DNA of 52,218 nt, taken from assembly GCA_003427395.1 (NCBI GenBank), contig BFEA01000023.1, positions 2,016,220 through 2,068,437 on the forward strand, read 5' to 3'. This document shows, in pieces, positions 36 to 27,765 of this stretch; within the stretch, counting starts at the first letter, position 1, and the number at the start of each line of letters is the position of its first letter. The notes beneath the pieces were generated by a model. The model saw only the letters and a list, made by a program, of their open reading frames with translations. It had not been told where the DNA came from and did no database searches. The stretch is from Chara braunii. Taxonomy: Eukaryota; Plantae; Charophyceae. Both the position numbers and the translations under genes were made by a program.

Positions 36-730
36 TGCGGTCAAACTCCGACGAACCAGTTTGTCACATGCACCTCGTTTGTTGTCCTCTTTTCTCTCTC
101 TCTACCATATATATATATATGATCACAAACATATATGATGACTCTGTGAAACTCAGACGAAACAGTTTGTCTTAGCCCCTGCTCTGGTGTCATCTTCTCT
201 CTCTATCTGCCCACGGTTTACCCGGGTAGATATATATATATATCGTCATGTATATGAAGAAAAATCAAAAACTCCGACGAAACAGTTTGTCACAGCCCAT
301 CCTTTTTTGTCCTCTTCTCTCTGTCTCTACCAACGGTTTACCGGACAGTTCTGTTTGTGACGATATATATATGAGTCGGTGAAACTCCGACGAAACAGTT
401 TGTCACAGCCCCTCGTTTGTTGTCCTCTTCTCTCTCTCTGCCTACGGTTTACCGGGCAGTTCTGTTTGTGACGATATATATATAGATATATATATATATA
501 TGATTTACCGACCACTTCTGTTTCTGTGCTTGCATGTGTATATGTTGTGGGTGTCTATGCTGAGCGCTGTGTATGAAGTACAATAATAATAATAATAAGA
601 AGAAGAAGAAGATGAGTCAAGGACAAAAACAAGACCTAACAGAACAAAAAAAACAATTATCTGACATATATATATATATGTCCTCTTCTCTCTGTCTGCC
701 TACGGTTTACCGGCCAGTTCTGTTCGTGAA
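36..730 (+). repeat. Minisatellite, unit of about 115 bp (ACTCCGACGAAACAGTTTGTCACAGCCC...ACGGTTTACCGGGCAGTTCTGTTTGTGACG) interleaved with (TA)n
   Basis: Four near-complete tandem copies plus a partial one. An inverted copy lies at about 1536-1612 and a dispersed partial copy at 28542-28580. Confidence 0.85.
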
Positions 731-1009
731 TATATATATATATATATATATATATAGATAGATAGATATAGATATAGATATATATATACACTCAGCGTTG
801 TGTGTGCTGCCATGTACATGTCCGAACAATGTCTGAGTCGCATAAGAAATAAAACGAAGAAAACTAACAAAGGAAACCTAAAACGACGAATAAGAGAACA
901 AGATCAAAAAATCAAACGAAGTAAACTAAAAAACGAAACCTAAAACATATTGTGCAAACGTCATGCCTGATGGCAACGTGATGCAAGCAGTTTCGATGCA
1001 ACAGGCCAA

Positions 1010-2170
<1,161 letters not shown>

Positions 2171-2575
2171 GAAACGACCACGCACGAACACGTAGACAAA
2201 CACGCAACCAAATGCATAACACCATACTCACACTTACACAGAACCGCAGCAAAGCGGAGGATCGACGACGGCCAACACAACTCCAAACGCGCGACCGCAT
2301 GCACACAACACAATAGCGAACACTCGCCAACACACCCACCGCTACTGGACGCCGCTCAAACACGCATGCACACACAGCCGCCGCGGAAGAGAAACGCAGC
2401 CTGTCGTGCACCCGCGTCGCGAAAACACAAAACGTGTGCGACATCGCCAGCACGCTGGAGGTGCAGTGGACAGGTGGACAAAGCGATGGCGCCTTTGTCA
2501 CATCCCGAACGCAACCCGACAGACACACGAACCACCGCACAGGAAACCTAACCGACCACCCACCACGACGTCACG

Positions 2576-2577
<2 letters not shown>

Positions 2578-2617
<40 letters not shown>

Positions 2618-2774
2618 NNNNNNNNNNNNNNNNNNNNNNNNNNNNNNNNNNNNNNNNNNNNNNNNNNNNNNNNNNNNNNNNNNNNNNNNNNNNNNNNNNN
2701 NNNNNNNNNNNNNNNNNNNNNNNNNNNNNNNNNNNNNNNNNNNNNNNNNNNNNNNNNNNNNNNNNNNNNNNNNN

Positions 2775-2842
<68 letters not shown>
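2578..2842. repeat. (GA)n microsatellite spanning an assembly gap
   Basis: (GA)n on both sides of an N run. Other gaps are at 27378-27583, 42630-42830 and 44303-44508. Confidence 0.95.
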
Positions 2843-2845
<3 letters not shown>

Positions 2846-3890
2846 GGCCACATCGCCGCACTGCTCGCTGGCCTCGCAGACCAACAACGACCCCAACCAC
2901 ATCGCACTCGAACAAGTTCACGCTGCCAGAAATGAAACGGCAAGGACGACGAACGGAAACAACAGAGCAAGGAGGCAGGGTCGGGTTAGGGGGATCATGG
3001 CGATGGCACACATGACTGTCAAAACCCCGATTATAGGTGAAAGCGTCAACGACATCGAAACCCTGCACGACTACACAGAGGAGACGCGTTTCCACATCGT
3101 CGTCTCATATGTATATATCGGTAGTACCGGGACAACGGTAACAATAACAAAATAAATAATACAAAAAAAAAGGCGCTCGGCGACGGATTTTTTGGATCTG
3201 TTTTCGTTTTTGTTTTTCACATTTTCATTGCGGGCCTTCAATTCCCGCCACAGCGCGACAGTCTAGTACAGATTGTCGGCGGCCCAATAACTGGACCACC
3301 CGACCGTTTCGCTGCCGCTTGATGAAACCCCGCCATCGGCCGCCCTCTACACCGTGGGGCCTTGGTGCAGTACCCAGGGACTTCGCAAGATCGGTGAGTT
3401 GGGGCGGACGACCTCCGAAAAACGCTCCCCTAACTCACCGGTACTGGGGGTTTTCGATGGCGGGGGGACCTGTGGTTTAACTAATGCAGTGTCTTGCACC
3501 ATTATACCTCTTACTTATTAGCTTTTAGCTGATAGGCTTGCAAGTGTTACATTACCTGCCCATAAAATATTCAATCGTTATACTGCCTAAGGAACACAAG
3601 TAAAGAACCGGCTCAGAAACCTGGAGTCGATAAAGAAGGTCCTTGGATAAGACTTTTGACTTTGCAAAAAGGAAGAGGAGTATTGGAGGGGAAAAATGAG
3701 AAAAGGTAGAGAAGGAGATGATATGTGATTGTGCGGTGATCAGGGCAACTAACCCAAGCATTCGACCTCTCTTGGTAAAGTGGCTTAGTACTGTTTTTTG
3801 TAAAGAATACTGTACCGCTCCTTACCTTGCCTTTAGTCACTTTTTTGTGCTCACTCGACAATACTCTAAAGATAAATTATTTACTTCTAA

Positions 3891-4447
3891 AAGAAGGAAT
3901 AAGAAAACTCCCGTGGGGTCATCCTATTGCTTGCTTGGTTCTAAACTAACAGACCTCATATGATACTGTAACAAAAGGGGTTACTGATACTTGTCTGTGT
4001 CTACTAACTCAATCATAGCTCGTCTAACTCTGAGAGAATAGTAGGGTAGCTCCCGTGGGGCCATCCTATTACGCTCTTAAGGACAGACTGGGCTCTGATA
4101 AAGGAGTAATTGGGAAATTTTGTGAAGGTCACCTATTGCTAACTTGAATTTTATACTGAATTTTTGATACGAGGTGGTCTGAATTGTTGATGAATGTTAG
4201 AACATGTATTGAAAATGCCTCAACAATGCCTTCTCAACTACTTGTTTTAACTGATAAAGTGATACTCTCATGCGAGTTATCTGGTCGCTTGCATAAAATT
4301 GTTTGAAATGATTGATTGTATAAAGACTGCATGGATTTTGAAGGGTGGTTGAGTGCTCTCGTGGGGCTACTCAATTACTCATTTGACTAACCGTTTTGTC
4401 TCGAATTGATCAACTAGTGGAAGATTCTCGTGTAAATCAACCCACTA
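3891..4447 (+). repeat. Array of five stem-loops with a conserved (Y)GTG apical loop and divergent stems
   Basis: Hairpins at 3891-3936, 4031-4079, 4101-4145, 4343-4380 and 4415-4447. Three share CTCYCGTGGGG. Stem sequences differ but stay paired. Confidence 0.7.
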
Positions 4448-6184
4448 TTTGTGTATGTCTACCATCTTGCGTACATGATTCACCCTTCATTTTGAAAGTC
4501 GTACCGATGGATCATTACCTATGTATTATGCTTGCACCTTTCTTTCTATGCCACAACAATTTATGCAGAGTTATCTCTTACCCATCATACATGAGAGTTG
4601 TCCGGAAGACAACCATAGTGGGTTCAAGTGTTGCTTGTCCTGAGATAGTCTGAATGAAGCGCTTGTTCTGATGAAGTCCGAATCTCTGATCTGGGTCACT
4701 ATGATCAAAAATATAAGAAGGGTTGAATCTCCGCTATATCATACTATTGGAGTACCTCTCTTAAAAGACTAGAAAAAGTCCCGATGAGGTAGAAAAAGAA
4801 GACGATGCGTACCTTTAGTTCCCTTTTGGAGCTGGATGATGTAAGTAAGTGTCGAATATACCCGTTGAACCCTAAAAAACATATAGTTGTTAGGCTACGT
4901 ACTTGAAAACCACGCGTGTTCGTGAGGTCATACATCATAGTACTTTCTTACTACAGGATTGTAAATTAAACTAGCCTTATTAATTATTGCTACAAAATTT
5001 AAATAGATTATCAAATTTTTAAGATCAATATGATATAGATGATAATGATAGACTTGGTCTCTCGATAATAGTCTGACTCTGAAGGTTGCATTATGCAACA
5101 TATGGGCTTATGACTACCTATTCAAGAATAATAACCATCTAGCTGCCAACATTATACTGTAGCAAAGTCATATACTTAATATGTACGTTTAAATGGTGGT
5201 GAATTAACGTATATCAGGTTCATTCTGATACAAAGAATCTCGATTTTCTGTGTAGCTTTCAAAAGAGTCAGCTTGGGGTATGTATGGTAATGAGACTTTA
5301 AAAACCCGATTATAAACTTAATGTGAGATTATATGAGTAGGTAAATGAAATAAAAGTGGGCGATACTATGTTTAGTTATCTCATAAGTTAAAGACCGACT
5401 AGCTAGTAGGAATAAGTTTATAACATTAAGGCAGTGTGATATGGGGTTTGATTAGTAGGGTTATTTAATCATGAAATATAAATTAATTATTTCATTACGC
5501 ACTTAGTGACTATCTGATCTTTAGGGACAAATAGTATAGCGAGCGTAATATTAGGTTATCTATTTGAAACATACGTATCCGTTTGAGGTTGTATATAATA
5601 GAGTATGATAATAAATTAGGTTTAGGAGTCATTGCATAGAGAGTCCAAATAAATTTATTGGATTCTTGAAAGAGATATGAATAAATTTAAATTTTGTTGA
5701 TTGGTTAAGAATTGAAAATTGTATCATGAAAATGATAAATATGAGACTATCTACTTAAATCACTTTCTCCTTTAATACTAGATAATCAGAGTATGAGAGT
5801 ATCCGCTTAAGGGTTATCCAACTCCTCGGATTACAGTATTATATAAAGAATGATAAAGTTATTTATTTCCGCTATAGAGAACGTGCATGGTCGGGTATGA
5901 ACGAATGTATGTAAGAATGAGTGATATATGTTTCAAGTGATGTGTTATTGTATGTCTTGTTGGCTAAAGTTGAAACTGGTAATGAATGTATGTAGTTATT
6001 GATTGTCTGATGACTGTTTTGTGCCTATTTGACTATGTTTATGAATTCCTTTCTTCAGTAAGGATATAAAATTGTATGAAATCCACGTTTGGCATGAGAC
6101 TGAAGGTGAATGGAGTGACCAACCTTTGAAGAGAAGAAATTTTCTCAAGGGAGGTCAGCATGCAAAATTTATCCTCTGAAAGAT

Positions 6185-8245
6185 TGCAACGTCGATTGAT
6201 ACTTTTTCCAAGCGGCTTAAAGAGAGTATAGTAAAGTCTCGTAGGTGGTAGTGAGACTCACGCCGGAACAATTTTTCTGGTCCATAGTGGGGTGTTGTCC
6301 CCTTTTCTGATGAGGAAAATGTGACTACATCATCATCGAAGGGGAGGAAAATGTTAGGGACTTTGTTAGGACGCTGTCTATAGTGAAGGCGGCTGTTGTT
6401 CGCCATGAGGTTAGGAGTGGTTACCTAACTTTGTGTCGAGCAGAGCCACCTCATCTCCATGGTCAAGGCCTAACCAACCTAGAGCATGTGGGGCCCGTTC
6501 GACTCTGTTGGCAGTATACTGATGGGGTCTCGGCATTGAAATCGGAGGGAGACGTTGTGAGGCTCAGTCTTGGAACGGGGCTCAAGATCTGAGATGTTAT
6601 CTCTTTGGCAGGATTACACCACCCCTCGACTCAGTATACCTCTGCAAAGTCAGCAAGAGCAATAAATGTTATGTCATCATTGTTGTTGTTTTTGTATCTC
6701 ATTGTATTTGTTTTAGTGGTGTTTTCATTGTAAACATCGTTCTCATTGATAATGGAAGTAACCGGTTGGTGTCTGATTGAAGTGATTTGATTGAATATTT
6801 TTTAATTGTCATTTACTTCCCTTTCAGTTTGAACATTTATTTATAATGTTACTTGTTCATTATTTACGTCAGGAGAATGTCGTTTACATTTGTATTGTCA
6901 AAGTCCTGTGAAAACAGGGGGAAAACCATGCGTACAACAAAAGTTGTGTTTGGATTGTTTCCTCACTATTGGCTCTGATTTGATTGACATTATATGATAT
7001 TTTGATTTTTGGTGATCATCTCAGAGAAGGTTTTATCCTCCTTGAGTATGTTCTGATTAATACTCGGACAAGAGTATTATAGACGTATTCGTACGATACG
7101 TTATTGAGTCGGTTCTTATTTGGATGATTTAAGATGTAACCCCTAAATGGAGGGCTGACGGTGACCTCAAAAATTGAGTCTTATTTTGAGTTATGAAAAT
7201 TATTGGAGGGACACCAAAAAATGGGCCCTGCAATGAAAAGACACATGAGATGTGTCCTCTTTTTTAGCTTCTTTTTGTGTATATTTTGCAGAGGGCACCG
7301 TTCACCATCCCAATGAGGTTAGTCTGAGATAAGATTAAAGGTTCCCGAAATGAAATCGTTTAGAATTGTTGATGTTATGAAAAAAATATCTTTTGCATCA
7401 ATAATATTGTGAAAACCAAAATGTTTATATTTATTTTGAGTTTTCAACTCATTTACTTATTTTTGGAGATCCCCGAGACGTGTGTTTGATTGAGCTGAGA
7501 TCGAGACAGGAAGACACGACCACTGAGTGACAACCTGACGATGTCCCTCGTTCATCGACTACTTGACAATCTGACGATGATGAGAAATTTGTTTTTATTG
7601 GTTGGTTCATATATTGATTTTTTGTATATATTGAAATACACATCGTTCATCCAATAAGTGGCAACCTGACGAGGGGGGAAATTTTGTCAATAAATTATGA
7701 ATTTTTTTTTGTATATATTGCAATAAACATCGTTTATCCACTTCAGGAGGTCAGTCTGAGGGGCTAAATTACCAAGCCTACGGTGGAAAATTAGTATCGT
7801 TGTGACGTAACTCCCAGCGTTGACTGCTGACCAAGTATAACCAGACAGCGGACCTTCTCGTTTTGGCCTAGAGTTGAAACCCGAAGGGCGGTCACCCTAT
7901 TGGGGATCAACTCAAGTAGTTATCAGAGGGGTCGAGAGTCAGGTCTAGAAGCTGAGTAAAACCCAGGATAGGAGGATTTACCTGTTACTGCGTAGCCAAT
8001 ACGGGAACCACTGTTAATATAACAACATAGTGAGCCGCAGATCAGACATGATCAATCGGACTGTGGTAGGTTAAGACCAAAACCGTCGATCCTCTCGCAT
8101 TAGACTTCGGGTGGGACGGTAATATGGTTTAGGTTAAGACCCGCATCCAAAGGGGCAGATTTCATGACTTCTCGGACAACCAACGAGGATCTGGGAAAAA
8201 AGTTTAAGGATGTGGAAAAGATAATTGTTGTCTCTCTTGATAACT
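6185..8245 (+). repeat. Structured unit A (~2 kb), paralog of unit B
   Basis: Colinear with 9915-11850. Shared blocks include GTAGGTGGTAGTGAGACTCA, CCAATACGGGAACCACTGTTAATATAACAACA and GACAACCAACGAGGATCTGGGA. About 77% identity in a hand-aligned ungapped 186-nt block. Confidence 0.9.
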
Positions 8246-9441
8246 TTCACCGTTACAGTACAGATCCAGTATCCCCACCATTGGTTCATTAAGTTTGGTT
8301 TGTGAGTTTCATTATGTGGGAGATCCGGGTTAGAATCTCTGCGATGGTAAAATGCATCAAGAGAGGCAATGTGAATCTTGACCGCATCTCAATCCAAGGA
8401 CTCGGATTTGGTTATCCACTTATCAAAGATGCGCCTTATTTTGGGAAAGGGATCTACCTTTTCTTTCAAAAAGAAAAGAGAGGTACGTGTATTGTTTTGT
8501 ATTGTATCATCTGTCCAGTAGTGTTATTGATCATGTCATATTTTATCAATTGATTTGATCATGGGGAACGATGTAAGGGGAAATTGTATGAACTATCGTG
8601 ATAAAAGTCCCAAGCGACGGGGACGTCGCTTAATAGGGTATGGGAATATTGTCGGACCAAATACCCTTACAAGGGTATTTGACCATGCTTTTGCAGTCGA
8701 CACAACAATGCCAGCGGCTACCAAAACGGAGCCGGTCTAAAATAAAAATGTGTGCGCGTTCTAGCGCGACGCTTTAAAACAATTTCCTCGACCATTGGGG
8801 CCGAGGCTAATCGGTGAGAAAAATTCGTTACGTATGTGCAGTCATTGTTGTAACGAGCGCTCTGATGGTCAGAATCGATAGTAATATTTTTCGACCAAAG
8901 ATGTCGAGAGATCGGTTGGGGTAGTGCTGTGTCAGATAGATCTACGACACACACTGAGACTTATTCATCGGTACGTTCGTTAGGGTAAATTAATATACGC
9001 CCCGGCCATACGGCCGAGGCGATTATTAATGTGTGATCGACGAGATTGCAATAGCACTCGGAATGCTAACTGTTGTTTTTTTCTGCTCGGCGGCTTGGTC
9101 CGTACACGTCTACTAAGGCTTGAGTGGTACCGGACGACCTGCTACTTGAGTGTTTTTCCCCGCTGCTCTGAGAGTCGCAGGCCTACCCCCGTTACTTAAG
9201 TGTTTTTCCGCGGCAACCCTCAATGTCACGGCCAACGGTAGGTACCGACCCTTCAGGCCTTCCGATAAACTAAGTACACTTGCGGGTCACACACACACTC
9301 AAGCCGACAAACACTCAGACAGACACGCATACCAGCAAGAGTGTAAACACACACACATACTTAGAAATGGGTTCAGGGCACTAGGTGGACTGAACCCCAC
9401 TTCTCTACATATACTGGAGTTGTTCCTCTTCTAATCGAAGT

Positions 9442-9528
9442 AGGAGCTAGCTGAGTGGGTTTCGGTGCGCATTGGGAATTAGGTGACTTGGGGATCGAAT
9501 CCATCCGACCCCGAGCTAGCTCCTTTTT
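9442..9528 (+). ncRNA. Putative Pol III type-2 small RNA cassette (A box, B box, terminal stem, T5)
   Basis: A box TAGCTGAGTGG 9448-9458; B-box-like GGATCGAATCC 9492-9502; 11-bp terminal stem AGGAGCTAGCT/AGCTAGCTCCT; TTTTT 9524-9528. It does not fold as a tRNA cloverleaf. Confidence 0.4.
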
Positions 9529-9914
9529 ACAATGAGCTCTTCTACGGTTTTACCCGGTATCGGTCGACAGGGGCTTGAACCCGTGACCTCGGGTTCAAGA
9601 TCTGTTACAGTTAGAGTCGTCGCGACACTTGGCACGCGCGGGTAGTTAGTAGTTAGATTCGATTCTTTTATTTTTTATTTTTTTAGTTATAGTTAGATTC
9701 TTCTTTTATTTATTATTATTATTATTATCATTTTTGGGGGCTTCTATCTCGTACTTCACGCGGTAGATTTTTATAGATGAATCCGCTACCAAATTGCGGG
9801 CAAGTTCGTTCTTATCTAGGTCGAATGATAACATCGAGATCGGCCCACTTGATATCGGCTCACATGTTCGAGAGAGGAGCGAGGGAAAGTAGAGTGCGGG
9901 ACCGCCACGCGCGA

Positions 9915-11850
9915 CAACGATGTTGATTGATATTTGTGCCTAATGGCTTAAGGAAGCCATAGTTAAGTCCTGTAGGTGGTAGTGAGACTCATACCAAAAC
10001 AATGTTTCTGGACCTTGGTGGGTATTGTCACTTTCCCTTACGAGGCGAGGTGCATACTCTATCATTGAAAGGAAAAAAAATGTTCAAGGCCTTCTCGTGA
10101 CTCTAATGGTGATTAAGGCAGCTACTACTTAGCATGTTCAGGTTTGGATTGAAAACCTAACTTTGTTTCATGATAGGTAGATCCACCATACTTTGGAGAA
10201 AAATTGTCTTGCCTGTCGGACCTTAGACCGGTGTGACTGGGGTTGTTTTACTTCGCTTGATGAGGTCGGTAAGGTAGGAACACTAATATCGAAGGGAGAT
10301 GTGGTGAGGCTTAGTTCGAAAGCGGAGTTCGGGATATCCCTCGACACAGTATACTTCTGTTAAGCCTGGCGGAGTACATACTATGTCCTCATCATTGTTG
10401 TTTTTGTAACTCTATTGTAGTCACATAATTAAAAAAAAATGTTATTTGCATTTTCGATTGTTATTGAAAGGTACTACGAGGTGACGTTTGTTCGAAATTG
10501 ATTTGACTGGTGTTGTAATATTAAAATGATATCATTATTATTTCTTACTTTAAACATAAACCTTTGCTAAATGTGTTATTTATTGTAATAAATTATATGA
10601 ACTTATCTCCTTTCTTTGTATGACATGAGAATGACATTTTCATTTGTATTGTAATGTTCCGTGGAAATAGGGGTGAAACCCTGCGTACAGTAAAAAATTA
10701 TTTATGATTTGTTTCCTTACTGATGGATTCGATTTGATTGACATGATATGATTTACATATTTCATGACTATCTCAGAGAAGATGTACTCCTTCTTGAGTA
10801 CGTCATGATTAATACTCCGATGCGAGTATTATACAAATATTTGTACGGTACATAATTGAATTAGTCATTATTTTAATTATCTAAGATCTAACCCCAAAAT
10901 GGAAGGTTAACTGTGACCTTAAAAATCGAGTCTTATTTTGAATCATGAAATTATTGATATTGGACAGACACTAAAAATGTGTCCTGCTTGATAAAACACA
11001 TGAGATATGTCATATTTGAAATACATTTAAGTTGTGTTTATTTTGGAGAAGACACTGATCACCATCCTAATGGGGTTACTCTAAGATAAAGTACAAGATC
11101 CAAGAATGGGATCGTTCAGAATTATTGATGTTATGAAAATATATCTTTTGTATTGATAATGGTGTAAAAGCTAAAAATTTTATATTTATTTTGGGTTTTC
11201 ATCTCGTTTTACGTATTTTGATAGATCCCCTAGACATATATTTAACTAAGTCGTGATCGACCCCTAAGTGGCAACCTGACGATGATGAAAATGGTCAATA
11301 CTTTTATATATATATATATTTTTTTTTGAAATGAGTATCGTTCATCCACCCCGGGAGGTCTGTCTGAGATACTAAAATCACCAAGCGTATGATAAAAAAT
11401 TAACATCATTGGGACGTAACTCCCAGCGTGGGTTGCTGACCAAGTATAACTAGGCGGCAAAGCTTCTGGTTTTAGCCTAGAGTTAAAACCCAAAGGGCGA
11501 CCGCCCTATTGAGGGAATAAACTCGGGTGGTTACTAGAGAGGTCGGGAGTCAAGTTTAGAAGTTGCATAAAACTCGGGATAGGAAAATTTACCCGTCATT
11601 GCGTAACCAATACGGGAACCACTGTTAATATAACAACACAGTGAGCTGCAAATCTGGCTTGATCAACCGGGTTGTGTTGGGTTTAGACCAAGAATGTTGA
11701 TCCCCTCGCATTAGACTTTGGGTGCGACGGTAATTAGTTTTGATTAAGAACCGCGTCCAAAGGGGTAAGTTCATTGACTCCACTGACAACCAACGAGGAT
11801 CTGGGAAGAAAGTATAAAGTTGTGATAAAAATGACCACTGTTTCTGTTAC
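9915..11850 (+). repeat. Structured unit B (~1.9 kb), paralog of unit A
   Basis: See unit A. The same hairpins are kept through compensatory or wobble changes. Confidence 0.9.
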
Positions 11851-13277
11851 ATGCCCAGTTGGGCGATGTACATGTAAAACCGAGGATCCGCAATGTGATA
11901 AAAAAGACTGAATGGACAATGCAATGCAAGTGGAATCTCAACAAGCAATGTGCATTCCGATACATACAAAATGGTACTTGATAATGCAGGAAAAACTTAG
12001 ATTAGGGTTGTTTGGTTGCCTTCGGAACACCTGTAGAGCAATGACGAGATTTTAATTAGAATATTAGGGAGGGAGAGAGATAAATTTCGGGATTGGTTTT
12101 CCGTTGGGACTTTTCAATGTGGTTTTCTTTTATTTTCTTAAATGAAATTGCTCGATTGGTTTTGTGGTTGATTGGTGTCAACTTTCACAGTAGATTAGGG
12201 TATTGGTGCCTGCTCTTTCTGAGGATTTGCATGAGGTGTTCATAATTTTTCAATAGTTGGATATGTTTGTTACCAAAGGATGTTGCTATCCATGTTATAT
12301 TACATTGTAGAATTGGTCGAAGAGATTAAGAGAAGAAGGATTTTTGCCCTTGACATAGTCGTGGCATGAGCTTTACCTAGTCAGAGAGCCTTGCTCAGCT
12401 TCGGGCTGCGACGATTTTTGTAAGGGATGCCGGACCCGTTTCCCAGCTTTGGTGTTAATAAAGATTGATCTTTTTTTATAAAATATATATATATATATAT
12501 TGGAAAAAAAATTAGGGAGAAAAAAAGAAAATTTTGGCAGCACTTCGTTATTCCCAAGGGGGCAAAATGTGCGCCGATAGCTGAAATAACGAAGTTTGAA
12601 CAAGATATAGAGCTATCGCAAAAAAAAATAACGTTAAAATTTAATAATAATTAAAATTAAATTAAAAATAAATAAAAAAATGATAAATTAAGTAGGAAAT
12701 AAGATAATTCAAACTTCTATAGAAAAAAAAAATTAAATCAAAGAGAAGGACAAAAAAAAAAAAAAGTTGGGGGGGAGGGGGATGAAAAAGTGATGAAGAA
12801 AGATAAAAATAGGTGATAAAGAGAAAAAAAGTGAACTAAGAGATTGGGTAGAGGAGGGTGGTAGAGTGGGAGAGAAAGATATGGAGAGGAGTAAAAGAGA
12901 TTAGTAGAAGATGGTGTGTGGGAAGGAGAGGAGATGAAAAAATGGTGGGAGATGAGTGAAAAGGGAGGTAGGAGGAGGAAGTAGTAGTAGAGTTGGAAAA
13001 AATGATGAGATGATCTAGGGGAGAGAGAGAGAGGGGGGTTGGGAGAGTAGGTTAGTGAAAAAAATGTGATACCAAGGTCTTGGTTGGCCAAGAGCAACAA
13101 GGTCACCAAGATCCACATGATCTTGACCTTCAAGGTGCTGACTGCCTGCTGCTGCAATGATATAAAAATAATAATAAATATAATATAGGGTTGGTTGAGA
13201 TCTTGATCAGACACTGTTGCGCAGCCCTCTAGCCAGGGGATCTTCACTGCTGTCAAACTGCTGCTACAACAGTAAAA

Positions 13278-13308: not shown

Positions 13309-13695
13309 CCATCATCTGGGTGTGCTGAGATCTTGATCAGCCACCCAAATCTCACTATAATGTAGCCCTCTAGCCAGGGGGGTCTTCAAGTTCTTTAGCA
13401 AGTTGTCACATGGCACTGCAGATGGCCACGTGCGCAGGCAGCAGCAACCAAGACGCTGCAGGGGGGCAAATAACAACCCACCCGCTGCTGTCGTGTTGGC
13501 CACTCCTCGCCCCTCGCTAATGGGGAGGAAGTAAATAGTTGGTATGCCACTCTTCAACACCAATGTGCCACACTACTATACCATATATGGAGTCTGGCCA
13601 GTGTGTTACAGCACTGGTTATGCACGCGCATGGTGGGCAACTGCCTTGGTTCAAACCCTGGCAGCAGCATGCATCCCGAATTTTGATATATATAA

Positions 13696-13977
13696 TCCGG
13701 GAGCGGGGCGGCGCAGGCCGGGGTAGCGGGGTGGGGCGGACCGGGGTAGTGGGGCAGCATGGGCGCGTGCGGTGGACTTGGCCTTCGCTCGCACGCGTCG
13801 TGATGGTACTCTCCTTTTTCACTGCGTGTTAGTCTCTCCGCACTGCACCATTTTCCCGTTTGTTTGCTTTGAAAATTGCCGAAAACGGACCAAAATCCCG
13901 CTATCGGGATCACACGATTTTTCCCACTTGTAGGATGGGGTAGCTGGGAGCGGGGACCGTTCCCGCTCTGATACTAG
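13696..13977 (+). mobile_element. Short non-autonomous Helitron-like element
   Basis: A|TC start at 13696. GC hairpin GAGCGGG/CCCGCTC (13948-13968) is followed by CTAG|T at 13974-13978, the canonical Helitron 3' end. The 5' boundary is less certain. Confidence 0.5.
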
Positions 13978-14674
13978 TGTGATGGCCCCATCAAGATGGC
14001 GGTCCATCAGGATCAAAACGCAGGATCAAAACGAAGGGATGATGATGGGGGGAGATGGAGATGGAGATAGAGCTGGAAGGGACAACGCAACTCCAACGCG
14101 GACTCAACATGCACGTATTCCAAAGTGTGCAAATGAAGAATGAGGCTGAAACAGAATGCAACTAGGGTATACCCCCATCGGACCGACTGGACTGGATTGG
14201 ACTGGCCTGATACTGACAGTGGTACCAGGGAGGACTGTAATGGACTGAATGAATATAAAACCTGTGAGAGCAAATAGCCACATAGGCTTGGCTGTAGGCC
14301 AATGTAGCCAGAGGCACGCTGCGGCGGCTAAGGCGCCTCATTTGTTCTTGTTCCACGCCTTAGTAGTAGTTTGATACCTACTCCCACCAGAGTGAGCTTC
14401 GATAGGCGCATGCCACTGCACTCAATTCAGATTAGGTATGTACCTACCACAGAGACTGTTCACCAACTCCTATTCCCCCTAAGCTCTAGGAGATGGTTGC
14501 CGTCAACTTCAATGACGGAGGGAGGTGGTCGACTCACCGCTTCACTGTGAACGAGAAGTGGTGATGGAACAGTGTCAGCGACCTACTGCCAGCGACGTCA
14601 ACGCAGAGCGCTCCATAGCGCCTGTTGCTACGGCCCCACTTTCCATTTAACCTTCCCTTTTTTGTTTTTACTTT

Positions 14675-15426
14675 GGGCCTTGCCACACCACTGTTGAAAG
14701 GCAAAAAAAATTGACGGCTGTCAGAATAAATTCGACAGCCTCCCTTTGACAATTTGCCCCCTTTTAGCCACACAACACTGTAGAGTGGATGCACTTGTGA
14801 ATACAAGATGGAAAAAGACAAACGCGCCTGAGGGTACGACAAACATTAGTCCATCCCGACCTCACGCCCACTCACCAAATTTTGAAGAGAAGTTGATGGC
14901 GTAGCCGAGGACTGTCGAAAGCATAGGAGTGGCAGGCTGTGGATTCAACAACTTTCGACAGGAGGTGTCGAGAAGCATTCTTTGACAACTTGCGAATTTT
15001 CTCCCCGTCTTCAATTTCGACAGCCTGTGGCCAAGAGAAACTATCGAAAATGGCGTTTTCGACATACATTTTTCGCCAAACGATTTTTCGCCACCCCCCG
15101 CCCCCCTTCGCCACACAACACTATGGAATGGACGCAATTGTGAATGTAAGATGGAAAAAGACGAACGCCCCTGAGGGTATGACAAGCACTAGTCCATCCC
15201 GACCTCACGCCCACTCACCAAATTTCGAAGAGAAGTCGATGGCGCAACCGACGGCTGTCGAAAGCTTCAGAGTAGCAGGCTGTGGATTCAACAACTTTCA
15301 ACAGGAGGTGTGGAGAAGCATTCTCTGACAACTTGCGAATTTTCTTCCGGTCTCCAATTTAGACAGCCTGTGTGGCGCAGAGAAATTATCGAAAATAGTG
15401 GTTTAGACAGTGGTGTGGGGAGGCCC
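14675..15426. mobile_element. PIF/Harbinger-type (Tourist-like) non-autonomous TIR element with an internal ~340-bp tandem duplication
   Basis: Imperfect TIRs GGGCCTTGCCACACCACTGT / ACAGTGGTGTGGGGAGGCCC, flanked by a 3-bp TTT on both sides. Internal repeat at about 14769-15052 and 15111-15400. Confidence 0.7.
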
Positions 15427-17188
15427 TTTGTTAGGATGATAGTCTTTTCTGGGTTGTTCCGCTTTCAGGGCCCTGAGGGAATCCTTTCCACCAGGGTGGG
15501 GGATCAGTCAGAGCAGGGGTCTCTCACTGGCCACTTTTGTCTCTGGACGTATTCCCAACGCCTGCACCTAAGCTGGGTAATGGTCCCAGAAGTTCCAGTT
15601 TGTTTGTCCGGGTTGGTTGTTGAGGATTCCCGGTCTCTCCCTTATTTTGCGATGGACGATCGTTAGTACACAGGACACAACTCATTCAACGTTTGAGCGT
15701 GCCCGGTCGGGCTCTGGACCGGCCTGTCCGCGAAAAGAGTAAATGCACAGGAGTACAGAAAGTTCAATAGCGGGAACGTGGACGAGGTCATCTTCGTGCA
15801 GGTGGAGCGTATCAGTGTGCTGGGTTCGAGACGAGGTCTCCGGGTCTGCGGAATCCTCTGAGCGGTTCTCTGAATGTACGTATCATGGTGTTATTTTGAA
15901 CAGATTCAGTCGAAATTTACCTACTCAGAGTATCCGCTCAATCACCTCACCTCACGCTGCTCTCCCAGACCCGACTGGCTTCGATACCGAGCGATTCTCT
16001 GAATCGACTTTGTCCGCGGGTCGAACCAAGCCAGCACTGAGGAGGGACAGGCCAAGAAGCAGAGGAGAACAGTGGTGAGAGCGGAAGGGGTCGCTTCGTC
16101 GGGGTGAAGAGGCTAGCGAAAGGGATCCTCAACGCGGTTTGGAGATAGCGCTTGTCGTCCGTACAGGCGCGCAGGCGCGCAAGTAATCATTCCCGTTGCA
16201 AGGGGGGCAGGATACCGATCGACGGCCTGGAGCGGCGATCAGGGATCCCTTAGGGGCTCGGAAGCAAGGGACGACGGGGGGGGGTGGGCTGAAGATCGTT
16301 GGTGTGAGAAGGGGCAGGAGCACGAGGTGAGAGAAGTGGTGGAGAGAATAGGGTGGGGAGAGCAAAGGTAGCTATCGACGAGGGAAGGGACGATGGCGTG
16401 ACAGGATTTGTACCCGAAGATCGGCCACGAGGCGAATGAGGGTGCACCCGGAATTTGCCCGACACGTGTGCGAATCATCTCAAGGGTCGTCTGAAGACAA
16501 CTGTGCTAGCGCGCGCGGGTTTTGAACCGAGCGTCGCGGGTTTTGGTGCATGGCTCTGTTGGTCGGCAATATCGAGGGCCGTGGGTCGCGAAAGGACCGG
16601 TGGGGGTGCCACGCGACGAATTGCGGGGGCGGTCGTGAACTCAGTCCGGTGACGTACCGCTCACCAGAAATTAGACTGAAGAGATTTGGAGGGCAAGAGA
16701 GCCGATGGAGAGGGAGAGGAAGAGGGAGACGTTGATCGGGTCTTCACCGACTCTGCTGTCTGCAGCAGGCAGTAATTCGCCTTCTCCTCCCAGGAGATAA
16801 GAATGGTCCGTCACGAGGAAGCGTATCAGAGCGCGCTTGTGTAAATTGTGTTCCACAGGTAATGGTTAAGATCGGTAATGGAGAGATGGCCATGGCGTTG
16901 AGTTGTCGGTAATACGCTGATACCCGTAGGAGCTGGAGGATTGGGGAGGTGGGGGAGAGAACGATCAGAGAGAGAAAAAAGAGGGAGTGGAATTTGTCCG
17001 ACTACCGACTGACGGCGCGCGGAGAGGAACGAGCAGAGGGGTGGGCACTGTAGGTGCTGGAGCTGCACTATCTAGTTGAGGCCCTGTGTGAACTGGCGAC
17101 TGCATCTGGACCTTGAGAAGGCGGAGAGATACACGCCCGCAGCCCTTTTCGCGGATGCAGCGTGGGGGAGCGGGGCCCTCAAGCTGGT

Positions 17189-17325
17189 GGATCACGCACG
17201 CCAGGTGTCTCTCGTCCTCGTCCATCCTTTCCTAGATAAGTAATGGCGGATCGTGCGCGCCAGGTGTTTCTCGTCCTCGTCCATCCTTTCCTAAATAGGT
17301 AATGGCGGATCGCGCGCGCGCCAGG
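17189..17325 (+). repeat. Tandem repeat of about 59 bp (2.3 copies) upstream of the RING gene
   Basis: GGATC..GC.CGCCAGGTGT.TCTCGTCCTCGTCCATCCTTTCCTA.ATA.GTAATGGC is repeated. Confidence 0.85.
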
Positions 17326-17618
17326 CGACGTGCGAACTCCTGTACGATTAATCACTGTCGCCAGCAGGACCGCATTAAGTGATGACGTCATCAGTTGTCA
17401 TCTGGAACTCGTTGTAGGTGGAATGATGTTAGCGGCGGCTGCAGCTTGGATGCCTCGCTGCACGCTGTTGCGCGTTCACGACGGCGCCAGTCACTGGCAT
17501 GCGCCACGTCGACCTTGAAGGTCCTCTTTGATCTCTTGAGGAAGAGGAAGGGGGCGAGGGGTTATGAAATGAGCTTGCGTTGAAAAAAAGAAGAAAAGAA
17601 CATGAACGTGAGTGAAGA

Positions 17619-20600
17619 ATGAAGACGAGGATGGCGATTATGCGGGCGACGTCCGTGGGAAAAGAACAGAAGTGGACAGATCATTCTGCCGATCTCTTCG
17701 TGTCAGCGCGGGCTACATTTATCATCATCCTTTGTCTGTTGTCTCCCTCTCAAGTCGAGAGTCATTACTCTCTAATCTGGGGAGCACGGGATGCGAGGAA
17801 GGAGCGCATGGAGATTGTCCACGTGCGGCACGTCTCAGCGTCGGTCCGTGGACATCGCGGCCACGTTCATCCTCCAGCCCAGGAAACTCTTGTCGATGCC
17901 TTCGCTATCGATCTTAGCCATGCAACGACGAGAATGAAGGGGCAATCCCAGTCTATGAGGGCAGTTGGAGCGGGTACCGATCTGCGTAATTCGCGGAATG
18001 AGGAGGGTGGGGAAGGGGAGGATACCGGAACGAGGGTCGGCATTCCCGAGGCGATCTGCAGGCTTGGGCGGGTGGAGGCTCGGCAACTGCGCTGGAGGGA
18101 GCTGGTTTGGGGTGGCCTGAGTGTTAATGTGAAGGGGGCTGTTCTTTTCCCGCATCCCTTGGGGGCAAGCATCTTGTCGGAGGATAGTATTAGTGCCGTA
18201 CCCTCCAGTGCAAAGGGGGAGAGCCGAAAGGAGGAGGAGGAGGAGGAGGCATGTCCAGCAGTTGAAGGCGGCGCTGAGGGAGTAAGTGGAAAATGGGAGA
18301 AAGTGGTGGAGTGTGAGAGATCGAGTCGGGCTGCAGCTGTTGACAACGCCGATAATAGAGTGATCGTGAAGATCGGAACCGTTGATGCCGCGGAATGCAT
18401 GGCCCATAGCCCTCGCCGTCAGCACTCGAAGGGTGTGAATATGACGATTCTGTGTGAGGTGGATCTGCACATGCGTTCAGCTAGGGGAGATGGAGAGGGA
18501 GGAGGTGGTGGTCGTTTTGCTGTGGAGGATCATGCGGAAGAATCCCTGACTTATTCGCGAGAGGCTGTAGGTTGCGAGTTCAATGTACAATGGGATGAGT
18601 ACGGGTATTGCGTCTGTGCGACGATGATAGAAGCGACAGATCTTGCTGCCTCTGGAAAGGGAGAGCAAGGAGGAGGAGGAGGAGCAGTACGTGGAGGAGG
18701 CCCATCGGCTAGCATGGCGGCCGTGCAGCTTCCTTTGATCGGAGATCGGTTGCCTTCGATGATGGAGGAAGAAGATGATGACGAAGAAGGATGGGGGGGA
18801 TCAACGACAAGAGGGAGAAGAGGAGAAGACGATGCCTCGGCGAATAGCAACCCAGGAGGGTCGGTGCTTGAAAGGGCGGCGGCCATGGGGAATCGACGAT
18901 CGAGGAAAGATGATGGAGGCGGGGCAAGGGGTGCTGTCGGCAAGGTCAGGCTCTCTGTGGACGTCAGCGTTGGGGTGTCGTCCGTCGGTATTCTCTGCTG
19001 GTGTGCGGGGCTGTTGCTGCTTGCTTGCGCGGAACCTCTCTCCCGAGTGCATGCCATGCACATCGTTTTCGGCGGTCTCTCCGCTGCCGGTATTGCGCAT
19101 ATGCTGTCTATGGTGGCCATAGCCGCTGTACCTGGTGTCGTCGTGGCTTTGCCTTGGGTTGCTGCTTTGTCAGTTTACCGGCTTGGGCTATTTGAAGCCC
19201 TGGCGATGCTTGTGGCCTGCTACGTGTATATGTTCGCGATGGCGCTAGTGCTTCTTTACCTTTACACGACACATTTTAACTACATCCAAGCGCTGTACTT
19301 GTTTGTGGTGATTAATGCCGCCGTGGATGGAGCGCTGCGCGCGGAAGCGTCGTCGTCGGCGGTGGATACAGCAGGGAACGGCGGAAGCAGCGGGGGAGGG
19401 GGGAGCATCTCCGCCGCCACAGATGCGATTGGCCGGGCTGTGGATCAGATTGCGCAAGAGGATGGGGGATCGACAGCAGGTGGGATTTTCGCGGGTTTCT
19501 TCGGCGAAGGAAATTGGCTATTCGGTCACCTCTTTAGCTTCGGCGGCGGCGGCGGCGGCGGCGGTGGTGGTGACGGTGGGCGTGGGGGAGGAGACCCTGG
19601 CGGCGGATTCGCATCTGGGGGGGAATGGGCGGAAACGCTGATCAGCAGCCTGCCGTACTTCGGTGCAGGAGCGGGCGGAACGGCGACGACGGGCACGATG
19701 AGTGTCTTGAAACGGTCGGTTTTCTTGACATTTTTAGTCGGAGGCGTCACTCTCCTTCTCACGACTACCAATGTGAATTTATATGCTATAGTCGCTCGAA
19801 GCCACGTGTCGCATCTCCCCGTCTGGATGGCTCTCTTCTTGGCCTCCTCCCCTGCTTTGCTTCTCGCCGGATTGGAGATACATTGTCGTTTGCTGTCTTG
19901 CACGCTGATCGCGTTTACCGGCTTGCCTGGTTTGATCCTACAGCTTGGATCGGACGGCCTTGATTGGTTGAGAGGGCGACTGGGCTTCATCATTCCGGGC
20001 CATATGCGCCACGGGGCCAGTCGTTACAATATGCGCTCGTTGCGGCGTGTCTTCTACTCTCACGTCTTGGAGGAGGAAGAGAGTGGGGAGACGGGTCGAC
20101 GGACGCGGCGATGGGGGCACGATGGAGAACGATGCCAGTCACAGTCACGGGGAGGTTTTCGAAATTGTGCTTTGGCATGGCGTCTGCTGGGCGTCGGTGG
20201 GAGCAGCTCGAAACGGAAGAGAATGCCCTCTTGTTTCGTCTTTTTGAGGAAGTTTCAGCGATGGTGCCTTTATTTGGTCGCGGGTGTGGACCCCCCCGTT
20301 GAGGGGGAGCCGTTGAGGACCCGCATTGGCAGGAGTCTGGAGAGCTGGTGGAAGGTGCACGTCAACAGTAATTCTAGACATGCATCGGCGAGGCGGCGAC
20401 GACACGTGTCGCATCCTCGTGAAGCGACGACGGGCGGCGGGTCGTCTTTCTCATCTGCGATGCATCAGCATGACGACGACGACGACGAAGACAGCTTCTC
20501 CTCTGATCCGACGTGGAATCTGTCTATGGTGGAGGAAGAGGAGGGAGAAGAGCAAAGCGGTGGTACCGGCCGAGGGTGCAATCGAGGCTATGGTGCAGCA

Positions 20601-21185
20601 GGCGCAGGATCCTCAATGAGCCGAGGATCGGGGAGGGGAGAGGAAGAAGAAGAGGAGGGCGTGGGGCCGTCGACTTGCAGGATGTTGCAGGGAGGGAGAG
20701 GGAGACGAGAGTTGACGATCGGAGGCGGGGGGAGATCACAGAGTGTGGGGACCACCACAAGGATATACTCCGGCAGAGGAGCAAGGGGCGGCATGGGTGA
20801 TGTGTACGATACCGCCTGTAGCTCGAGGTTGATTGATGGATCAGGTGGGAGTTGTGAGAAAAGCGACGAAGGGTTTAATAATGATGATCATGATGATAAC
20901 GCTGAGCAAGATGATGAGGACGATCGCAGATACTATGAATATGTGACCGACGAAGATGATGGCTCAGATCAGGCAGGAGAGAGAGCGCAAGAGTGGGACT
21001 GGATGGTGGCAGAGGGGTTGACTCCCGGTGAAGCTATCGCGCTTCAAAGCTGCCCCGTCTGCCTATGGGCGAGGAAGAATATGGCCTTCGGATGCGGGCA
21101 CCAAACCTGCAGACAGTGCAGCCTGAGTCTTTCGAAGTGCCCCATCTGTAGGAAGCGAATTTCTGTTAGGATACCGCTTTTTTAA
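17619..21185 (+). CDS. Intronless multi-pass membrane protein with C-terminal RING-HC (C3HC4, RGLG-like) finger; putative membrane E3 ubiquitin ligase
   Basis: 1188-aa open frame. N-terminal hydrophobic segment (FIIILCLLSP), several hydrophobic helices (about 18960-19950) and Gly/Glu-rich linkers. The terminal CPVCLWARKNMAFGCGHQTCRQCSLSLSKCPICRKRISVRIPLF matches the RGLG-family RING pattern. Confidence 0.9.
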   Translation: MKTRMAIMRATSVGKEQKWTDHSADLFVSARATFIIILCLLSPSQVESHYSLIWGARDARKERMEIVHVRHVSASVRGHRGHVHPPAQETLVDAFAIDLSHATTRMKGQSQSMRAVGAGTDLRNSRNEEGGEGEDTGTRVGIPEAICRLGRVEARQLRWRELVWGGLSVNVKGAVLFPHPLGASILSEDSISAVPSSAKGESRKEEEEEEACPAVEGGAEGVSGKWEKVVECERSSRAAAVDNADNRVIVKIGTVDAAECMAHSPRRQHSKGVNMTILCEVDLHMRSARGDGEGGGGGRFAVEDHAEESLTYSREAVGCEFNVQWDEYGYCVCATMIEATDLAASGKGEQGGGGGAVRGGGPSASMAAVQLPLIGDRLPSMMEEEDDDEEGWGGSTTRGRRGEDDASANSNPGGSVLERAAAMGNRRSRKDDGGGARGAVGKVRLSVDVSVGVSSVGILCWCAGLLLLACAEPLSRVHAMHIVFGGLSAAGIAHMLSMVAIAAVPGVVVALPWVAALSVYRLGLFEALAMLVACYVYMFAMALVLLYLYTTHFNYIQALYLFVVINAAVDGALRAEASSSAVDTAGNGGSSGGGGSISAATDAIGRAVDQIAQEDGGSTAGGIFAGFFGEGNWLFGHLFSFGGGGGGGGGGDGGRGGGDPGGGFASGGEWAETLISSLPYFGAGAGGTATTGTMSVLKRSVFLTFLVGGVTLLLTTTNVNLYAIVARSHVSHLPVWMALFLASSPALLLAGLEIHCRLLSCTLIAFTGLPGLILQLGSDGLDWLRGRLGFIIPGHMRHGASRYNMRSLRRVFYSHVLEEEESGETGRRTRRWGHDGERCQSQSRGGFRNCALAWRLLGVGGSSSKRKRMPSCFVFLRKFQRWCLYLVAGVDPPVEGEPLRTRIGRSLESWWKVHVNSNSRHASARRRRHVSHPREATTGGGSSFSSAMHQHDDDDDEDSFSSDPTWNLSMVEEEEGEEQSGGTGRGCNRGYGAAGAGSSMSRGSGRGEEEEEEGVGPSTCRMLQGGRGRRELTIGGGGRSQSVGTTTRIYSGRGARGGMGDVYDTACSSRLIDGSGGSCEKSDEGFNNDDHDDNAEQDDEDDRRYYEYVTDEDDGSDQAGERAQEWDWMVAEGLTPGEAIALQSCPVCLWARKNMAFGCGHQTCRQCSLSLSKCPICRKRISVRIPLF

Positions 21186-21829
21186 CGGAATGACGTAGGA
21201 ATCGATCAGTTAATTAATCATTATACCTGCTTTTAACCGGGTGACGGATGAACTGATCAGTTGATGGTCACATCATACCGCTGCTTGATGCGTAAAAAAA
21301 AAAAATCGTCGCTGGTATTGTTTCTTTACCCCCCCCCCCCCCCCCGCCTCCCTCTTCCCCCCCCAACCCCCTTGCCTCCCTTCGCCCTCTTCTTATCAAG
21401 GAACTTGTACAATTGCACTGGCAGAAGAAGGTGCAGGCCCTGTAGGGAGTCCCTTTGTTTTTTTTTTTTTTTTTTTTTTGAGGTGCCGGGATTCTCTACA
21501 CCGGGAGCCGGTGTTCATTCGTTTCGTACACTTGTGGCGGTTGCCCTGCCGTCATAACCGTTGGGGATTGGACAGGGGAGATTGATTCACTTGGACAGTT
21601 TTTTCCATTTATAAAAAAAATAATAAAAAAATTGTGGACCTATGTTTGGTTTCGTGCTGCGGACCTGCGTTGGAATTTTAAAATTTTAGATTTATTTTTA
21701 TTTTTTTATATATAGGATTTGTCTGTTGGTTTTGGGTTTCAAGGAAATCTTTAGAGGGACTTGTACATAAGAGAGCGGGCAAGCTCAGCATGAGGTTGAT
21801 TGCTTTCCCCCCCCCCCCCCAAAATCCAA

Positions 21830-22285: not shown

Positions 22286-22308
22286 CAACCAGGGACAGCC
22301 AGGTACTA

Positions 22309-22413
22309 CAGTCTTCCCCCGAATACAACGTACGGTCATTATAGCTGACTTTGGGCTATATTTCAGTCTAAATTCAGCTATAATGACCGTACGTTGTATT
22401 CGGGGGAAGACTG
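22309..22413. mobile_element. Palindromic 105-bp MITE with TA target duplication (Tc1/mariner-pogo-like)
   Basis: Perfect arms of about 40 bp: CAGTCTTCCCCCGAATACAACGTACGGTCATTATAGCTGA and its reverse complement. TA at 22307-22308 and 22414-22415. Confidence 0.85.
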
Positions 22414-23693: not shown

Positions 23694-23781
<88 letters not shown>

Positions 23782-23919
23782 CTTTTCGTCTACTTCACTT
23801 TTGCAGGGTGGATAAGGGAATTGGACAGGATATCATTCTGGGTTTGCCATGGTCGTCCATGGTTGGGTAATCGTACGTTGCATATGGGCTCTGTTCAGTG
23901 AGCGCCGTGAGGTTGTGAA

Positions 23920-25042: not shown

Positions 25043-25083
<41 letters not shown>

Positions 25084-27625: not shown

Positions 27626-27690
<65 letters not shown>

Positions 27691-27707: not shown

Positions 27708-27765
<58 letters not shown>

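Follow-up and report, generated by a model that had tools for sequence, protein, structure and literature searches.

What kind of sequence is the ORF-free, hairpin-bearing stretch at positions 3172–12450 of the 52,218-nt window (the whole stretch of Chara braunii DNA analysed here)? A preliminary description presented it as a single cassette, which could be either a giant structured RNA or a non-coding mobile element present as a DNA copy. Taken as a whole, its observations were partly confirmed and its interpretation was partly supported. Rather than one gene or one element, the region probably represents AT-rich intergenic DNA made up of fragments of several protein-free repeat families and some unique spacer.

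Composition and Coding Capacity of the Region

The left border of the region is indeed abrupt: the composition switches at 3172, directly 3' of an A run (3160–3171, + strand), and the AT skew changes from 0.68 (positions 2001–3000) to about 0 beyond. Judging by sequence and composition, this A run, which closes the upstream A/C-rich sequence, forms the switch border as a part of the neighbouring DNA and not of the cassette. An assembly gap is located close by, at 2619–2775. The right “boundary” near 12450 is an AATAAA/T-run/(AT)n tract. Over the whole region, the + strand has the T/G skew ascribed to it (A.285, C.173, G.224, T.318), and its GC content is 0.40 compared with 0.50–0.58 from 13 kb on, where the DNA bears genes.

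A credible ORF is absent, as had been stated: the longest stop-free run comprises 102 codons versus the shuffle mean of 118, and alternative stop-codon sets yielded no outstanding frame over 3172–12450. Pfam gave only chance-level matches on the 82 stop-to-stop pieces of at least 45 aa, including no RT or endonuclease ORF remnants of the kind expected in a 5'-truncated LINE copy, and no match on the upstream flank. The region contains no Rfam family (0 matches at the gathering score and 0 at E<=5) and no tRNA according to ARAGORN. Its first part (3172–6185) is AT-rich non-coding DNA with a GC content of 0.38, in which internal long repeats are absent and a 21-nt motif occurs three times (at 3908, 4050, and 4356).

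Copy Number and Transcription

DNA and RNA reads were mapped to positions 6501–12500, and the copy-number and transcription results cover that span. Summed contig depth, in which a single copy corresponds to about 13, reflects copy number only roughly. At a likeness of at least 80%, 8,642 DNA contigs fell on this span, mostly at less than 95%, while the exact-match contigs have a depth of about 9–13. Per 200-bp bin, the summed depth is 22 at its lowest (9701–9900), 35–850 in the bodies of the two repeat units described below, 1,200–4,900 over the 3' part of the units and 8239–9100, and 46,000–96,000 at the top (8501–8700, 9101–9300, and 11701–12100). With bins that vary in depth between about 22 and about 96,000, this span is a mosaic of repeat families of very unequal abundance around the near-unique 9701–9900. 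These data, in which the copy numbers of the families differ more than 1000-fold, contradict the layout as a “single cassette”.

Much of 6501–12500 is repeated genome-wide and non-coding, and we therefore regard it as TE-derived. In this respect the idea of a DNA copy of non-coding mobile elements holds, but not in the form of one 9-kb element.

Transcription was assessed with three oligo-dT runs, of which 6–13% each was sampled and which miss non-polyadenylated RNA; in all three, RNA depth stays at about 0 across the low-copy parts 6701–7500 and 9701–10900. RNA reads gather on the high-copy bins, where 92–96% of them align only in part and 77–84% continue into unlike sequence. At positions 9134, 9136, 9278, and 11905, nearly all of them carry a non-reference letter, which is the genome-wide majority. 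Because of these non-reference letters and the run-on into unlike sequence, the RNA reads on high-copy pieces are attributed to other loci.

Direct Repeats A and B

The two direct repeats of about 2 kb reported in the region do exist. Unit A (6186–8238, + strand) belongs to a moderately repeated non-coding family, with a summed DNA depth of 360–4,600 versus about 13 for a single copy, and unit B (9922 to approximately 11843–11848, + strand) is a second, more decayed and more AT-rich copy, which stops where a high-copy element starts. The units have the same orientation at a spacing of 3.7 kb, and their identity is 72.6% over 1,849 aligned columns, reaching 76–81% in blocks. Both borders are sharp, with no homology beyond them either before or after A and B, and no further unit copies were found within the 52-kb window.

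Elsewhere in the genome, copies of the unit family extend past 8238 to at least 8678, as seen in contig records 1–5, which span 7828–8678 and have about 81% identity to A, being about as close to it as B is. The sequence contiguous with unit A in these other copies (8239–9100, + strand) is moderately repeated (depth 1,275–2,900), and a search for its counterpart after unit B, at 11849–12700, revealed no homology. Unit B has a DNA depth of 35–320 over most of its length, which is 5–10 times below the matching parts of A, an RNA depth of about 0, and far fewer relatives at a likeness of at least 80% than A; exact single-copy contigs cover 9959–10962 and 11008–11432.

From the alignment, the A/B substitutions look neutral: ts/tv is 1.49, 3-periodicity is absent, and G>A and C>T are in excess in the direction from A to B. 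The 3' core of the units (7730–8238 / 11340–11848) is better conserved than the remainder; a 22-mer from the invariant core, scanned against metagenomes, gave no match. The unit family becomes more abundant towards one end, in the manner of 5'-truncated elements. It is possible, although rather doubtful, that the unit of about 2–3.5 kb (6186 to approximately 9100 or beyond; 9922–11843) represents an undescribed family of large protein-free mobile elements of this genome, whose 3' core would serve as an RNA handle for a LINE or LTR reverse transcriptase acting in trans.

Short High-Copy Elements and the Spacer

Between and beside the units, several short elements occur at far higher abundance. 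The palindromic mini-element at 8650–8702 (53 bp) is very high-copy (DNA depth 49,847 in bin 8501–8700) and has TGTCG...CGACA ends and a central hairpin of 10–12 bp (z −4.3 on the + strand and −3.5 on the − strand). A loose end before 8649 occurs in 80 contigs with an agreement of 0.36, and joints are found at 8702/8704; because the flanks differ among copies, its left edge is considered a true terminus. No TGTCG...CGACA pair with a 4-bp TSD was found in or around the region. The sole TGTCG...CGACA pair in the window (45515–51121) was rejected as a candidate, being within chance and without LTRs.

The next very high-copy repeat occupies 9119–9500 with a core at 9119–9340 (depth 68,280 in 9101–9300 and 20,998 in 9301–9500), and at 9134, 9136, and 9278, almost every DNA or RNA read has a letter other than that of the window. 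The hairpin at 9442–9528 (+ strand, z −3.17), previously described as a “Pol III-like cassette”, contains motifs resembling box A and box B, with a T run after them. It has many dispersed copies (DNA depth about 7,000 at 9453 versus about 13 for a single copy), and neither ARAGORN nor Rfam assigned it to a tRNA or an RNA family. A decayed sequence resembling the 3' half of a tRNA follows at 9554–9600 on the − strand, PBS-like when read on the + strand; its hairpin has a z of −0.9, and ARAGORN recognised no tRNA in it. Just 5' of unit B lies the near-unique stretch 9701–9900 (DNA depth 22, RNA depth 0), whose start is overlapped by a T-rich low-complexity tract (9652–9740) that was left out of the read mapping.

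Unit B is abutted by an element of about 130 bp that is very high-copy (11844–11975, depth 45,918–96,177) and has loose ends at 11844 and 11971–11975 and an unremarkable fold (z −0.08). At position 11905, the depth is 403,495 and nearly all copies have G. The remaining DNA up to 12450 (11976–12450) is non-coding and low-copy to moderately repeated, with a depth of 56 in 12101–12300 and 904 in 12301–12500.

Origin of the Region

We suppose that fragments of several unrelated interspersed repeat families accumulated here over time, leaving at least one near-unique stretch among them. A and B would both belong to one moderately abundant non-coding family with a length of at least 2 kb: A would run on into a further 0.45–0.9 kb of the unit family, while B, probably older or more decayed, would end at the start of the very abundant element of about 130 bp. 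The short abundant elements (8650–8702, 9119–9500, and 11844–11975), some with inverted repeats, probably explain the local hairpins, with the tRNA-like Pol III-type hairpin sitting inside the 9119–9500 element. The copies would decay neutrally, and the locus would not be transcribed as a unit. The data themselves establish that the stretch is repetitive with unequal copy numbers, lacks coding capacity and structural conservation, and yields no locus-specific poly(A) RNA; beyond this, we infer that the families consist of non-autonomous retroelements or MITE-like elements mobilised in trans and that A and B were inserted independently.

The arrangement of the units may be read differently, with A and B as the two LTRs of one old LARD-like retrotransposon whose internal domain is 8239–9921 and which was moved by Gypsy-type machinery in trans. 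A LARD is defined by two LTRs, PBS, PPT, TG...CA ends, and TSD, by the lack of coding capacity, and by a length above 4 kb (PMC13570524). This origin would agree with direct repeats of about 2 kb in the same orientation around a 1.7-kb non-coding interval, with the TG start of B (9921), with the ...GTTACA at which both units can be read to end (8256 / 11851), with the purine-rich tract 9868–9893 and the tRNA-complement-like stretch 9554–9600, and with the presence of a retroelement RT within the window. However, LTRs are near-identical at insertion, while the A/B identity is only 73–81%. The tRNA-like stretch 9554–9600 is not an adjacent PBS because it is 1.3 kb from the end of A, and it also lacks a TGG start; directly after A, at 8238/8256, there is no TGG-initiated tRNA complement that could act as a PBS. 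The purine tract stops 27 nt short of B in near-single-copy DNA and, given the depth of 22, it lies outside the repeated family. Since 8239–9100 is as repeated as the unit and the surroundings of the purine tract are near-single-copy, the “internal region” is not one family. Abundance does not fall across 8238, as solo LTRs would cause, and B draws 5–10 times less DNA depth than A. As for the ends, B starts with TGTTG where A has CGTCG, and the shared GTTACA end needs a 14-nt gap. Over all plausible end combinations, 4–5-bp TSD candidates number 7 versus about 7 expected, and none is at the homology borders. The LARD-like element suggested previously thus fails on the adjacent PBS, the adjacent PPT, the TSD, and the repeated internal region, and we consider the LTR origin unlikely.

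Alternatively, a local segmental (tandem-like) duplication could have produced A and B from a segment of about 3.7 kb that already held one repeat copy, with decay, deletions, and insertions afterwards. The same orientation and closeness of the units, their sharp shared borders, and the lack of other copies in the 52-kb window would fit such an event. But 8239–9921 is unrelated to 11849–12700, as are the flanks before the units to each other; other genomic copies resemble A (about 81% in contig records 1–5) as much as B does (76–81%), and B has far fewer relatives than A. A duplication of this kind is therefore as improbable in our estimate as the LTR pair.

Folding and the Structured-RNA Reading

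The proposal that the whole stretch, or the unit family, is a functional long structured RNA or a non-coding RNA replicon read from the + strand draws on the ORF-free and T/G-skewed character of the sequence, several stable local hairpins, an excess of short inverted repeats, and the better conservation of the 3' core of the units. Individual hairpins are real: z is −5.5 at 3325–3470, −4.3 at 8645–8705, and −3.2 at 9440–9530. The first of them, an imperfect GC-rich foldback about 146 nt long, has the strongest local fold of all hairpins in the region (−79.5 kcal/mol, z −5.46), and the window at 3322 has a z of −5.4 on the + strand and −2.5 on the − strand. Within 400 nt, inverted repeats exceed dinucleotide shuffles approximately 2–3.6-fold (129 versus 73 for 8-mers and 17 versus 4.7 for 10-mers), which is somewhat above control DNA, the control 21186–30000 being left out of this count for its ambiguous bases (N) or low-complexity runs.

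Nevertheless, the “continuous pairing potential” was not found: in folding of 150-nt windows against dinucleotide shuffles, the mean z is −0.52 on the + strand and −0.56 on the − strand, close to shuffled sequence and to neighbouring control DNA (−0.00 to −0.34), and only about 11% of windows have z below −2. The equal means on both strands leave nothing of the claimed + strand preference, and no perfect Watson–Crick stem of at least 12 bp was detected within 400 nt. For the conserved A/B core, consensus folding gives a z of −0.28 on the + strand with 8 compensatory pairs versus 6.3+/−2.1 in shuffles, and all seven 300-column A/B blocks are at chance on the + strand versus column-shuffled alignments, both comparisons being based on two sequences. 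Within the units, just one hairpin block (6999–7300) is strongly conserved; its better fold is that of the − strand (z −6.45), for which a TE-internal palindrome is the sole explanation offered.

Therefore, with folding near shuffles and without strand asymmetry, A/B covariation at chance, an empty Rfam search even at E<=5, and a poly(A) RNA depth near 0 over the low-copy parts in each of three runs, the functional giant structured RNA is not upheld. The neutral substitution pattern and the mosaic of families of very unequal abundance also speak against it, and we regard it as highly improbable.

Just as hard to believe is an insertion of organellar (NUMT/NUPT), viral, or contaminant origin, to which the low GC content and the nearby assembly gap could point, but which is opposed by the absence of tRNA, rRNA, intron families, and protein-domain remnants, by the lack of ORFs under alternative codes, by the exact-match contig depth of 9–13, equal to that of the other mapped contigs of this genome, and by the genome-wide dispersal of the repeats.

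Significance and Comparison with Known Elements

The repeat patchwork removes a false “giant structured RNA” candidate and otherwise matters little. ORF-free, hairpin-bearing, and strand-skewed stretches in this TE-rich genome have the look of a non-autonomous repeat patchwork. Repeat annotation gains one mid-copy non-coding family and three short, very abundant elements, each with a reference copy in the window, and the repeat library of this genome should include them.

Giant structured non-coding RNAs are represented by the bacterial OLE, GOLLD, and ROOL and by eukaryotic lncRNAs. The studied region is similar to them in being long and ORF-free with some stable hairpins, but it has no covariation, strand-specific fold, or transcript in poly(A) RNA, and it is repeated as separate fragments instead of one conserved unit. 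With LARDs and long TRIMs it shares the lack of proteins, a non-coding interval between two long, equally oriented direct repeats, and repetition of the family in the genome; it differs in having no adjacent PBS or PPT, TSD at chance, and an interval that is part repeated and part single-copy. The short elements resemble SINEs, MITEs, and LINE-dependent retroposons: although no tRNA, 7SL, or 5S head is recognised by ARAGORN or Rfam and no poly(A) or microsatellite tail, TSD, or partner LINE was seen, the pieces of 53 bp, about 130 bp, and about 220–380 bp occur at a summed depth of 10^4–10^5 and inside many transcripts, one of them has box A/B-like motifs and a T run, and one has inverted termini, a sharp end, and variable flanks.

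Results

For the stretch 3172-12450, one study supplied four DNA runs, and three RNA-seq runs from oligo-dT libraries bear the same species label; reads were aligned to 6501-12500 (6,000 letters) at a likeness of at least 80. In the DNA run X1, 8,642 contigs fit this region, three quarters of them at less than 95% identity. The exact-match contigs (9959-10962 and 11008-11432) have a depth of 9-13, which we took as single copy, and the summed depth per 200-bp bin does not equal copy number. This depth is 22 at 9701-9900, 35-99 at 10101-10900, 56 at 12101-12300 and 360-850 at 6501-7700; it rises to 1,200-4,900 at 7701-8500, 8701-9100 and 11301-11700, and to 49,847 at 8501-8700, 68,280 at 9101-9300 and 45,918-96,177 at 11701-12100. 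Differences of 3-4 orders of magnitude between adjacent segments cannot come from one element.

The two-unit layout described previously is well founded: units A (6186-8238) and B (9922-11848) are direct repeats whose ungapped blocks are 76-81% identical and whose 1,849 aligned columns together reach 72.6%. Their homology ends sharply on both sides, the flanking sequences being no more similar than shuffles, and their substitutions (transition/transversion ratio 1.49) lack 3-periodicity. From A to B, G>A and C>T changes number 178 vs 125 in the reverse direction, an excess that marks B as the copy with more decay and a higher AT content. Further copies of the unit family (DNA contig records 1-5) are continuous from 7828 to 8678; therefore, the family reaches past the part shared by A and B, and B is truncated at ~11843, exactly at the start of a ~130-bp very abundant element. 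Immediately upstream of B, the DNA (9701-9900) is near single-copy.

The ~130-bp element adjoining B (11844-11975) has loose ends at 11844 and 11971-11975 and shows no special fold (z -0.08, folding energy relative to shuffled sequence). At position 11905 the DNA depth is 403,495, nearly all copies carrying G where the window has A, and poly(A) RNA reads contain the element in both mates. At 8650-8702 lies a 53-bp mini-element with TGTCG...CGACA termini, a central 10-12-bp hairpin and an extremely high DNA depth (a bin average of ~50,000). On the left it ends sharply at a true terminus, 80 contigs with variable flanks diverging there with a flank agreement of only 0.36. Within the stretch such termini occur on this mini-element only, and no TGTCG...CGACA element bounded by a 4-bp TSD was found. 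A TGTCG...CGACA pair at 45515-51121 with GTCC as its “TSD” was rejected as a bounded element, as it does not exceed chance expectation and lacks LTRs.

The claim that the stretch is ORF-free and matches no known RNA family was confirmed. Its longest stop-free run is 102 codons (standard code) vs a mean of 118 in mononucleotide shuffles, alternative stop-codon sets gave no outstanding frame, and a Pfam scan of all 82 stop-to-stop pieces of at least 45 aa returned chance-level matches only (best E 0.0035 among 82 queries). ARAGORN detected no tRNA in the stretch, and Rfam gave 0 matches across the entire window at gathering score and 0 at E<=5 in 3000-12700.

The “hairpin-dense” character stands in part. 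Perfect inverted 8-mers within 400 nt number 129 vs 73+/-10 in dinucleotide shuffles (1.8x), and 10-mers 17 vs 4.7+/-3.1 (3.6x), the excess being smaller in control DNA (13400-17600). Hairpins at 3325-3470 (z -5.5), 8645-8705 (z -4.3 on the + strand, -3.5 on the - strand) and 9440-9530 (z -3.2) are clearly non-random. However, windowed folding, which the preliminary description had treated as decisive, goes little beyond shuffles and controls: across 61 windows of 150 nt the mean z is -0.52 on the + strand and -0.56 on the - strand, the range in neighbouring control DNA is -0.00 to -0.34, and a z below -2 is reached in only ~11% of the windows. The long perfect stems were not recovered, none of at least 12 bp being present within 400 nt in the stretch. 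Folding shows no strand asymmetry; thus, the + strand G-U wobbles are a product of the G+T-rich composition. Window 10672-10821 on the - strand has a z of -5.3.

For the 3' core, the best-conserved part of the units (7730-8238 / 11340-11848), the + strand consensus fold computed by RNAalifold has -88.5 kcal/mol vs -86.8+/-6.1 in column-shuffled alignments (z -0.28), with 8 compensatory pairs vs 6.3+/-2.1; on the - strand z is -2.56, with 6 pairs vs 6.5. Seven 300-column A/B blocks range from z +0.6 to -1.75 on the + strand, their compensatory counts being at chance. The sole strong A/B consensus fold is found on the - strand of the palindrome-rich block 6999-7300 / 10751-11050 (z -6.45 vs -1.55 on the + strand), which may be a TE-internal inverted repeat. 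In this comparison of two sequences only, with its low power, structure is not conserved between A and B, and no result supports the RNA-structure reading.

RNA was sampled on 6501-12500 at 0.9-1.7 Gb from each of three oligo-dT runs, a library type that misses non-polyadenylated RNA, and no continuous transcript, start or end was seen there. Across 6701-7500 the depth lies between 0 and 0.6 in all three runs, and across 9701-11300 between 0 and 1.2. The reads are almost confined to the high-copy bins, where 92-96% fit only partly and 77-84% pass into sequence that does not resemble the window; reads at least 99% alike to it number only 0-27 per run, and at 9134, 9136, 9278 and 11905 nearly every read has the non-reference, genome-majority letter. 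The partial fit, unlike continuations and genome-majority letters indicate that these reads come from other copies within other transcripts.

The abrupt switch at 3172 is real, an A run closing an upstream segment that is very rich in A and C (AT skew 0.68 in 2001-3000), and the T/G skew of the + strand is evident from the composition of 3172-12450 (A.285, C.173, G.224, T.318; GC 0.40). Since an assembly gap (N run, 2619-2775) lies within a long (GA)n array ~400 bp upstream, the left context of the stretch depends on a scaffold join. Just 3' of the stretch, 12451-13050 is an A/G-rich low-complexity tract (C 4.3%, A 46%, G 28%) with extreme purine strand bias; its counterpart on the upstream side is the A/C-rich flank 2001-3000.

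Elsewhere in the window, an ORF at 47790-48770 (+) is a retroelement fragment, which confirms the TE-rich context; it contains an RVT_1 reverse-transcriptase domain (E 3.5e-31) and the first part of an RNase H-like domain. An uninterrupted 1,188-aa ORF at 17619-21185 (+) has a RING finger of the C3HC4 type at its C terminus (residues 1143-1182; PF13920, E 1.6e-7), with no exact product on record and no Atlas relative. At 45709-46069, two direct repeats of 161 nt share 98% identity, with a spacing of 200 nt.

Discussion

The preliminary description portrays the stretch largely accurately, but neither a giant structured RNA nor a single 9-kb non-coding replicon is supported by the folding, the A/B structure or the DNA and RNA reads. 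We consider it probable that the stretch represents ordinary intergenic DNA in which decayed, protein-free interspersed repeats form a mosaic. This mosaic would comprise two copies (A and B) of a mid-copy family of at least 2 kb, three or more short elements of very high abundance, among them one with inverted repeats, and a near-unique stretch; the tRNA-like Pol III-type hairpin would sit within one of the very abundant short elements. The mode of movement of these families is what we infer. As for units conserved at the RNA level, a GC-rich domain, a catalytic core and a vault-like mini-gene, the hairpins behind these readings are present, but a function for them is not supported.

[quoted passage not shown] Two long direct repeats are present, although they are very diverged; no PBS adjoins A, the sole tRNA-complement-like stretch (9554-9600) being 1.3 kb off and without TGG, and a purine tract (9868-9893) ends 27 nt upstream of B and lies in near-single-copy DNA. 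The supposed internal region is partly repeated and partly unique, abundance does not drop where the supposed LTR ends, and TSD candidates number 7 vs ~7 expected by chance, which makes a LARD origin highly improbable. Since the PBS, purine tract, internal region, abundance and TSD all depart from the LARD pattern, we do not assign the stretch to the LARDs.
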